From Antechinus flavipes (taxonomy: Eukaryota): a stretch of 64,000 bases of DNA. Shown in pieces: positions 34,501 to 37,500 of the stretch. The translations under genes and the position numbers were made by a program. The notes under the pieces are model-generated. The model made no database searches and was not told the origin of the DNA. It worked only from the letters and a program-made list of their open reading frames with translations. Each line of letters opens with the position of its first letter. The first letter of the stretch is position 1. The stretch lies in the NCBI RefSeq assembly GCF_016432865.1, contig NC_067401.1:191394001-191458000 (forward strand). The letters are read 5' to 3'.

Positions 34501-37500
34501 CCCCCACCTCTACCCCCTCCAAATTCTTTGGGATTCATTAGCTTCAATATCCATTCCTCCAAACCATCCTTCAGTAACCCCTAGAGATCAGAACCTTATC
34601 GGCATTCAACCTACCTCCTCTGCCCTTCCCCCTACTTGGGAGCCCCAATATCCAATCAACCTCAGTTTCTTCTCCCCTTCCCCTTCTTTGTCCATCTTTT
34701 TTCTCCAACCCCTCCCCCCCCTCCAGAATCCCAGCTACTGCAATAGAGGTGGAATCAGTCTTACCCACTACCCATCCTACTTCCAATCATTTTTTCCTTT
34801 TCTTAGCATTTTTCCATTTCTGTATTTCCTCATCTAGCCCGTATACCCCCACCAACCTAGTGACAGCGCCTCCCACCCCTTCCCAGGCCAAGGAGGGGGG
34901 AAATGGGGAGCTGCCTTGGCATTCTGAGCAAGCAAGGCCCCCAGGAAGGAGGAGCAGGTTGATGAAGTCCCTAGCTGTGGAGGTTCAAGCTGCTTAAGGG
35001 GACTGACATTTGACCTATCTCCTCTCCAGCTATGTCCCCTGAAGGAGTAGGAGAAAGGGTATTTGAGAGAAAGCCTGCCTACTCAGCAGATAGATTTCGG
35101 TATCTACGGTTTCTCTGACCCTACTAGCTATGTCCCTTTACTGACTGCAGACCAAAATGATGGGAATAGGACCTCCTACCCCTTCCTTATCTGGGGGCTC
35201 CGGCTCTAGCTCCTTACCCCCACCTTCTCGCTGTCATCACTGCTGCTGTTTCTGCTGCTTTCCGGGGGGTAGGTGAGGCTGGGGTGGAAGGAGGGGGAAA
35301 GGGAGAATTTAGGGGCAAGGGTACAGACCTGGGGTGATATCTCTCCCCTTCTTCTCTCCTTTCCCTTGCCCTCAATCCTACCTCCCCTTCAGAATACCAC
35401 CTGGGCCGCTCCAGGAGGAAGAGCGTTCCTGGAGGGAAGCAATACAGCATGGAGGCCGCCCCCGCAGCCCCTTTCCGGCCCTCGGTGAGTGAGTGACTGC
35501 ACCCCTGCCAGATGTGGTTCCAACTAGTCTCTCCTTCCCCCTCAGTCTTAGCTGGTATCTGTGGTTTCTGGAAAAGGGGGCAGGGAAAAGTGTGTGTCTG
35601 TCTTGTCTTGTGTCTCCACCTCTTCCACATCCCTTCTTTTCAACTCTGTCCCGTGCTTCTTTGACCAGCCTTGCCATTTTCTCTTGGCTGTTATATGTGA
35701 ATAGGAACTGTGAGCAGACATGATGTTCTTTTCCTTTTAAGGTTCCGATTCATTCCCAAGATTTCTCTCCCTAGTTGTTGAAATGGGCGGGCTCTGCTGA
35801 CCTTGCCTTTCTCTCCCCTCCCCTTTCAATCCCAATCTCTGCATCCCCCCACCCCACCCCCAGCAAGGCTTCCTGAGTCGAAGGCTGAAAAGCTCCATTA
35901 AACGCACAAAATCGCAGCCCAAACTTGACCGGACTAGCAGCTTTCGACAGATCCTGCCTCGATTCCGAAGCGCTGACCATGACCGGTACAGTGGCTAGGG
36001 TTCATGATATTGTGGGAGGGGGCAGATTGTGGAGGCAGATGGTTGAGATTCTAAGGAAAATCAAGTTAACAGTTATAGGGGAAGATTACTATGGGTCAAA
36101 AGGAATGGAGAAAATACTAAAGGTATACATAGCAAAAGTGGGGTGTTTAGTTACATAGGTAGACAGTGATCTGGGAGATAGTGGTGGTAATATATGTTGT
36201 CAGATGGGAAGAGAAATCTAATTTGTCTATATAGGTTTCAGAAGAACAGAAGTGAGGCTAAACAGAATATACAGGTTGTAGAAGGAAGGTATGAAATAGA
36301 GTGGATGAGATGGGCTGGGGTGTCATACAGATGGTTAAAAGGGAAGGGGGAGACTGAATTTGTGAGGAATCTATATGGGGACAGAAAAGAATGAAGATGA
36401 GATGGAAAATTCACAGAAGGGGCTGGACAAGGTAAGGCCAGTAGATATGATTTTTTTTTTTGGCTAAATTTTCTGGGGGGATGTTTAGATAGAAGAGATA
36501 AGACTGAGACGATATAGGTTAACAGGGAAGGGACGGAATTTAGAGATAAATATATAGATGAATAGGGCTACTTTTGACAAAGTTGGGAGAGGGGATAATC
36601 TACCAGTGTATGTCTCCATTCCTTGGAATCTCTCTTCCTACCTTGCTTCCTTCCCCACAACCCCTCCTACCCTCTATGAGAGAGCCCTATCTTACCCTTC
36701 CCCCATGTCTAGCCACCCCCAGGGTTGGTCAAATAGAGATTTGGATAAAGTGAGTCATACTCTCCCCTCCCCCTTAGGCTGAAAAGGGTGGATTTAGGGC
36801 CAATGGGGGGTGAGGGCATGGTATTCCTGGCCGCGGGGGCGGGGTGGGGGGGCCGGGGGAGCTTGATGCTGACGGCAGCCAGACCCGAGATGACGAGGCT
36901 GCTATAAATAGTCTCAAGGAGGCTCCCACACCCGAGTTCCCCCCTCCCTCTTCTCTGACTCTCCACTCTTTCCCTTTCCATCCACAGTCCTCATGTTCTA
37001 GTATCTGGAGTCTTTTTATTATTTGCCATTTTCAGGAGGAACATGGAATATGAATTTGTCCTATCTCTCCATTTCTTTCTTCTCTTCTCTCATCTTCTAT
37101 TTCTGAATCTCCATCATTCCATTGTTCTTCTATGTCTCCATTTCTCTTTTCAAATTAATCTCTTCTATAGCCTTTGTTTTTTATTCTTTCTTTCCATTCT
37201 TCATTTTTGTTACCTGTCTGTCTTACTATTTTTTAAATTTTCTTCCTTTTATTTGCCCATTTTCCCTCTTTCATCTTTTCTTCCCATCTCTCTTTTTTCT
37301 CTCCTATTTTTTTCTCCAAATTAATTTTCATCCAAGAAAAGAACTTCTGAATTCTTCATTGCCCAGATGTCAGCTCTTTTTTGTTGGCTTGTCAGTCTCC
37401 TTCCTCTTTTTTCCTGTATCTTCTTAGCACCCTTTCCCTTAATTTCTCTAGCTCTTAACTCTTCCTGAATTGAAATTTTGTTTCTAAGATCACAATACCT

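Follow-up and report, generated by a model that had tools for sequence, protein, structure and literature searches.

Analysis of a 64,000-nucleotide stretch of the Antechinus flavipes genome (assembly GCF_016432865.1, contig NC_067401.1, positions 191,394,001 to 191,458,000 of the forward strand; hereafter, the window) outlined a conserved non-coding block of about 340 bases (about 36651-36993) in intron 5 of SYNGAP1. As delimited by alignment, the core of this block is a compact cluster of transcription factor motifs. The block appears to have been retained at the same position since before the marsupial-placental split, and it is very likely functional, since its roughly 340 bases are almost unchanged between a marsupial and placental mammals. 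We favor, with a probability of about 0.5, its reading as an enhancer-type transcriptional control module. The block is not the promoter of the SynGAP-C isoform as defined experimentally in mouse, where the mapped SynGAP-C start sites lie further upstream.

A conserved motif cluster in SYNGAP1 intron 5

A motif scan of the window recovered, on the forward strand, all six motifs listed in the initial annotation of this region. These are an AP-1 site (TGAGTCA) at 36751, a CCAAT box at 36800-36804, a GC box (GGGGCGGGG) at 36836-36844, two cAMP response element (CRE) half-sites (TGACG) at 36870-36874 and 36891-36895, and a perfect MEF2 site (CTATAAATAG) at 36902-36911 that, as had been proposed, doubles as a TATA box through the overlapping TATAAA at 36903. 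The exon positions also bear out the placement of the cluster within intron 5, about 1 kb upstream of an ATG at 37903. The MEF2 site is the sole match to CTAWWWWTAG in the 64-kb window, and the scan of the region for CArG boxes (SRF sites) returned none. When a 170-base frame was slid over the window, at least five of the six motif classes co-occurred only at frame starts 36733-36800; across 100 copies of the window simulated under a first-order Markov model, the highest number of classes per frame was three (79 copies) or four (21 copies). Since the MEF2 and TATA classes correspond to one site, leaving five independent sites among the six classes, and since the motif set was chosen post hoc, the argument against chance leans more on conservation than on this statistic.

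The comparative analysis encompassed the SYNGAP1 loci of otter (L002), badger (L001), mouse (Celera assembly, L003), tenrec (L004), a snake (L005) and a bird (L006). These loci were reached via protein, by comparing the open reading frame (ORF) of exon 8 with cluster representatives and then using a bird SynGAP from among these as query for named orthologs, and exons were mapped singly on each locus rather than as a spliced model. The BLASTN alignments of intron 5 took in the window up to 36804 and from 36852 onwards; the otter counterpart of the interval between them (36805-36851), read on its own, contains two GC boxes and a GCATG.

Within the 1.9-kb intron 5, the block is the only segment for which the window and placental sequences align, and it is found at the same, collinear position in otter, badger, mouse and tenrec. 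Conservation, which the initial annotation had suggested as a check, hence extends across a marsupial and four placental mammals at the orthologous position. In the left half of the block, window 36651-36773 matches otter 14149-14270 with 74.6% identity (E 2e-16), and identity amounts to 69.8% in tenrec (E 4e-15) and 72% in mouse. The right half is better conserved, with window 36852-36993 presenting 77.9% identity to otter 14348-14495 (E 2e-25), 81.1% to mouse (E 1e-23) and 80% to tenrec (E 1e-23). For the core at 36852-36945 identity reaches 83% in otter and 85% in mouse, compared to 88% for the flanking coding exons 5 and 6.

With the exception of the CCAAT box, the motifs themselves are conserved in the five mammals. 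The elements GTGAGTCA, GCTGACGGCA, GATGACG and GGCTGCTATAAATA are unchanged in all of them, as is GGAGGCTCCCACACCC, a few bases past the TATA site, and a CTCTC.A.TCTT element about 30 bases further downstream is likewise invariant. This invariance encompasses the AP-1 site, both TGACG half-sites and GGCTGCTATAAATA together with about 20 bases beyond it. An initiator-like CCACACC is located at 36926-36932 (A at 36928), with a CACCC-type run to about 36936, and the spacing between the TATA box and CCACACC is 25 bases in 5/5 mammals. The mouse MEF2 site ends in A and still satisfies the wider consensus YTAWWWWTAR. Conservation peaks over these factor-type motifs, 105-190 bases from the GTGAGT within GTGAGTCA, and not at that putative splice site, and the block contains 8 CpG dinucleotides versus 0-2 in its flanks. 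Outside the mammals, snake intron 5 retains 13 identical bases spanning the first TGACG, followed at some distance by a degenerate AT-rich box, and none of the cluster motifs were detected in the bird intron. The 9-base core of this 13-base stretch, CTGACGGCA, occurs once per locus, within the block, in the four placental mammals and in the snake.

The possibility that the motifs came together by chance in a portion of the intron with elevated GC content, and that the block is devoid of function, could draw on the shortness of the motifs, on their selection after viewing the sequence and on the lineage-specific nature of the CCAAT box. It is contradicted by the orthologous alignments, which extend over about 340 bases in a marsupial and three placental superorders (E 1e-16 to 1e-25), with the rest of the intron unaligned. 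Because an alignable counterpart of the block is present in the corresponding intron of four placental mammals, a chance origin is considered excluded, or at best extremely improbable.

Other explanations were also discarded. A lineage-specific repeat or long terminal repeat promoter is at odds with the absence of any repeat family in 30-40 kb of the window and with the orthology of the element in placentals. A small Pol III or Rfam RNA gene following the TATA box was likewise rejected, as the sole Rfam match was a sub-threshold Y_RNA at 37814-37892, 900 bases away. With regard to a coding micro-exon, the corresponding segment is in frame only in its 27-base marsupial form and spans 28, 29 or 31 bases elsewhere. 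The marsupial form (window 36723-36749) is a short putative exon without stop codons that would add nine residues between exons 5 and 6.

The SynGAP-C start and its mapped promoter

The ATG at 37903 had been named in the initial annotation as the start of SynGAP-C. This assignment is matched by Rattus rattus isoform X11 (P0295), which begins exactly at the residue encoded by this ATG, and by the length of C-alpha2 (1167; Ensembl transcript Syngap1-214), which equals that of A2-alpha2 (1340) minus 173. C-type proteins are annotated in rat and birds, and any transcript entering exon 6 from intron 5 would have a first long ORF beginning MQSFKESHS. Exact look-ups of the window ORFs at 37903-38211 and 37043-37321, of mouse isoform 2 and of the rat C-type isoform returned no record. 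The activity-induced nature of SynGAP-C, also noted in the annotation, has been reported, both B and C transcripts increasing about 2-fold after 4 h of bicuculline treatment (McMahon et al. 2012, PMC3621422).

The same study mapped transcription starts in mouse by rapid amplification of cDNA ends (RACE), identifying one start site for B, at +10,515 from the A1 ATG, and eight for C, at +11,164 to +11,379, which form a dispersed cluster with 5' untranslated regions (UTRs) of 287-502 bases (McMahon et al. 2012, PMC3621422). These positions place the start of C transcripts 649-864 bases past that of B transcripts. The mouse L003 gene range begins at the A1 ATG (position 1001), and the published C start sites, taken at face value, fall at 12165-12380, within intron 4, although N gaps ahead of the B exon, whose sizes are estimates, mean that absolute positions may be shifted. 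The argument from B to C is relative, and thus independent of the sizes of these gaps. Since the C start sites are located at most 864 bases past the B start site, which itself precedes the B ATG at 11748, all of them must lie before 12612. The TATA box of the mouse block is at 13481, so that the C start sites precede the block by 870 bases or more. The distance between the B ATG and the block is similar in the window, otter and mouse (about 1,750 bases), indicating that the window counterpart of the C start region is intron 4 (35485-35863).

The mouse Syngap1 B and C promoters (PMC3621422) resemble the block in belonging to the same gene and the same neighborhood. They are internal starts giving rise to N-terminally different SynGAP proteins, each of them induced about 2-fold by activity, and the mouse C protein starts at the ATG located 1 kb downstream of the block. 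They differ from it in position, with the B start upstream of the B exon and the C starts in intron 4, as opposed to about +12,480, in intron 5, for the block ortholog. They also differ in architecture, since C transcripts arise from a dispersed start-site cluster and the block presents a TATA box. Furthermore, the leader running from the block to the ATG would be 967 bases long in mouse and 975 bases long in the window, outside the 5'UTR range of the RACE-defined C transcripts.

The identification of the block with the RACE-defined SynGAP-C promoter is therefore not supported. The initial annotation had put the cluster forward as a strong candidate for this promoter, and had linked the fate of the proposal to the location of the C start sites and, among other properties, to conservation of the cluster. 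The mouse RACE start sites do map elsewhere, whereas the cluster is conserved, so that the motif cluster is upheld and strengthened by the comparative analysis but its interpretation as the reported C promoter is not. The distinction corrects a tempting mis-assignment, as published C transcripts begin in intron 4 and not in the intron 5 block.

Intron 4 also shows evidence of conservation, with its first 215 bases presenting 64-66% identity to otter and badger (E 1e-18). It contains a GC box near 35786, and C transcripts initiated in this intron would be 5'-extended versions of exon 5.

Enhancer, promoter and splicing readings of the block

In the reading that we favor, the block would operate as a control module carrying a MEF2/TATA site, two CRE half-sites, GC boxes and an AP-1 site. 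From sequence, we infer that this module would be bound by the calcium- and activity-regulated factors MEF2, CREB and FOS/JUN, and by Sp/KLF factors, that it would respond to activity, and that it would most likely act as an intragenic enhancer of the activity-induced internal promoters B and C, located 1-2 kb upstream, with the C promoter starting in intron 4. The block may additionally fire weakly as a promoter, given the presence of a TATA box and an initiator at a fixed 25-base spacing.

Several lines of evidence are consistent with an enhancer. Both B and C are activity-induced, and their start sites are located within 1-2 kb of the block; the combination of sites is that used by activity-regulated factors; and conservation peaks over factor-type motifs. 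As expected of an activity-regulated enhancer, consensus sites (TGAGTCA, two TGACG and YTAWWWWTAR) are conserved in the five mammals. SynGAP is repeatedly cited in the literature as a MEF2 target gene, and the literature search returned no co-mention of CTATAAATAG with synGAP.

Activity-regulated neuronal enhancers, such as the synaptic activity-responsive element (SARE) of Arc, combine CREB, MEF2 and AP-1/SRF sites. In sequence, the block resembles the Arc SARE as a compact, deeply conserved cluster of CRE/MEF2/AP-1-type sites near a synaptic MEF2-target gene. It differs from it in being intragenic, in containing only CRE half-sites and in the lack of a detected SRF site.

Some observations weigh against an enhancer. 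The post hoc choice of the motif set makes the cluster statistic weak on its own, and the CCAAT box is not conserved, being absent at the aligned block of otter, mouse and tenrec. The invariant spacing between TATA box and initiator fits a promoter better than a pure enhancer. In addition, GTGAGTCA is an equally good candidate 5' splice site, with conserved acceptors upstream, and a conserved intron beside an alternative exon could account for part of the block. The enhancer, additional promoter and alternative exon readings are mutually compatible.

The TATA-initiator arrangement raises the possibility, which we consider doubtful, that Pol II genuinely initiates at the block, which would be an internal promoter. 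In this reading, the TATA box at 36903 would direct a sharp start near 36928-36935, and the transcript would run unspliced into exon 6, as a 5'-extended exon 6 translated from the ATG at 37903, providing a second route to the SynGAP-C protein apart from the intron 4 RACE start sites. The 25 bases separating TATAAA from the initiator A at 36928 are within the range sought for a TATA-type core promoter (about 25-31), and both the TATA box and CCACACC, with their spacing, are invariant in the five mammals, as are the following ~20 bases. The published C transcripts share this design, starting within an intron ahead of a constitutive exon, and the C-type proteins annotated in rat and birds are also compatible with such a promoter. 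Some muscle genes have promoters in which the TATA box is itself a MEF2 site. The fit of CTATAAATAG to both consensuses likens the putative promoter to these, and its neuronal and intronic context sets it apart from them.

The putative transcript is less convincing than the core promoter. The initial annotation had been unable to define a first-exon donor, and in each of four species the roughly 700 bases past the putative start contain no donor of at least 4 bits; in the window there is none between the putative start and 37797. The leader would hence span 870-1055 bases and contain 2-11 upstream ATGs, near chance expectation across species (11 versus 8.8 expected in the window), and this proximity to the expected number reveals no sign of selection for a translatable leader. 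The usable first exon expected of a TATA-type promoter was thus not found. A TATA box with an initiator predicts one sharp start, as opposed to the dispersed cluster of C start sites, and the eight C RACE clones all map elsewhere (PMC3621422). In four RNA runs of A. flavipes, from unspecified tissue, a fraction of 0.17-0.20 of the sampled words of 35000-38400 was present in the assembled contigs, which leaves little room for a 975-base leader (28% of that interval) but constitutes weak evidence. The literature search returned no mention of an intron 5 start site.

A broader proposal, which we regard as unlikely, is that the block is a third internal SYNGAP1 promoter, not mapped in isoform studies. 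This TATA/MEF2-driven promoter of at least therian age, with a sharp start, would make C-type SynGAP directly dependent on MEF2, CREB and AP-1, and would also be the MEF2 response element behind the long-known link from MEF2 to SynGAP. If so, the C-type SynGAP made from the block would lack the start of the PH domain.

Two further features were observed in the interval between the block and exon 6. The sense strand of window 36990-37890 is a pyrimidine-rich tract of nearly 1 kb (G 10%), with placental counterparts presenting 61-68% C+T. These counterparts also share a second conserved block, located at about the alignment columns that correspond to window 37234-37264.

The initial annotation had read the TGAGTCA as an AP-1 site. 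The site is present and invariant in the five mammals, but its reading is ambiguous, because GTGAGTCA is equally a consensus 5' splice site. The left half of the block could accordingly be an alternative non-coding exon (a poison or 5'-UTR exon) ending at GTGAGT, with the right half as its splicing-control intronic flank, a scenario that we deem improbable. The donor in GTGAGTCA scores 9.1-12.6 bits in the five mammals, above all nearby real donors (2-9 bits), and a conserved pyrimidine tract with a CAG/G acceptor is located 27-31 bases upstream of it in all of them, so that by score both a donor and an acceptor ahead of it are present in the five species. A second acceptor would define an exon of 73 bases in otter, badger and tenrec, and of 81 or 86 bases in mouse. 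G runs follow the donor, and GCATG is found after the otter donor. Moreover, the shortest mouse C 5'UTR comprises 287 bases (PMC3621422), compared to about 212 via exon 5 on L003 (12379-12580 plus 14463-14472), and this 75-base shortfall would disappear with one more exon, of roughly 75-86 bases; the estimated N-gap sizes of the Celera locus explain it equally well. The length of the exon varies among species and its 73-base acceptor is weak in the marsupial, and conservation is highest over palindromic factor-type motifs, 105-190 bases from the donor, rather than at the splice sites.

SYNGAP1 is known to use non-productive splicing at intron 10. The block shares with conserved poison exons bearing ultraconserved flanks a consensus donor, an upstream acceptor, a conserved flank and a dosage-sensitive neuronal host gene, and departs from them in its variable exon length and in a conservation peak away from splice sites. 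The literature search returned no mention of an exon within SYNGAP1 intron 5. The candidate GTGAGT donor is also present at mouse L003 13212, otter L002 14247 and tenrec L004 10513, where it may mark an unannotated alternative exon.

A control element at this location would have practical implications. SYNGAP1, a dosage-sensitive gene, ranks among the most frequent monogenic causes of intellectual disability and epilepsy, and the therapeutic approaches now being considered seek to raise its output by switching its splicing or by activating its main promoter with CRISPR. As such an element, the block would provide a handle for isoform-specific or activity-dependent up-regulation of SYNGAP1 and a place to seek non-coding patient variants, and it would permit testing how the B and C isoforms are co-induced.

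Gene map and additional observations

Coordinates of SYNGAP1 features in the window and in the mouse Celera locus (L003)
Feature	Sequence	Position	Strand	Remarks
SYNGAP1	Window	within the 64-kb window	+	followed by ZBTB9 downstream
SYNGAP1 exon 1 (MSRSRAS...)	Window	near 22567	+	A1 start MSYAP at 22612
SYNGAP1 exon 2	Window	near 26100	+	
SYNGAP1 exon 3	Window	28459-28569	+	
SynGAP-B first exon, coding part (...CCFPG)	Window	35157-35268	+	donor GGG/GTAGGT; rodent B N-termini compared
SYNGAP1 exon 4	Window	35393-35484	+	
SYNGAP1 intron 4	Window	35485-35863	+	counterpart of the mouse region with the published SynGAP-C start-site cluster
SYNGAP1 exon 5 (QGFLSRRLK...SADHDR)	Window	35864-35985	+	
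Block, left half	Window	36651-36804	+	GTGAGTCA 36750-36757; pyrimidine tract and CAG/G acceptor 36722/36723; CCAAT 36800-36804
Block, middle	Window	36805-36851	+	GC box GGGGCGGGG 36836-36844
Block, right half	Window	36852-36993	+	best conserved; two CRE half-sites, MEF2/TATA, initiator-like CCACACC
Putative leader	Window	36928-37892	+	pyrimidine-rich (G 10%, C+T 69%); 975 bases unspliced if the block is a promoter
SYNGAP1 exon 6 (ARLMQSFK...)	Window	37893-38046	+	ATG at 37903, SynGAP-C start
SYNGAP1 exon 7	Window	38192-38290	+	
SYNGAP1 exon 8	Window	from 39910	+	
ZBTB9	Window	58170-59564		downstream of SYNGAP1
B ATG	Mouse L003	11748		
Exon 4 end	Mouse L003	12081		
Intron 4	Mouse L003	12082-12458		
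Exon 5	Mouse L003	12459-12580		
Intron 5	Mouse L003	12581-14462		
Block TATA	Mouse L003	13481		
Exon 6 ATG	Mouse L003	14473		

Additional features were identified in other SYNGAP1 introns of the window. Intron 3 contains a CpG-rich island (30500-31440, GC about 0.60) with an N mask at 31202-31336. The open frame just before this mask is similar to an N-terminal extension present in a marmoset isoform, where it leads on to the D-type peptide MFSLHLPSGG. No copy of that peptide was found in the readable part of the window, and it may sit under the mask. Lastly, an inverted pair of repeats of about 150 bases, similar to short interspersed nuclear elements and 87-100% complementary, is located at 32156-32307 and 39508-39658, in introns 3 and 7.

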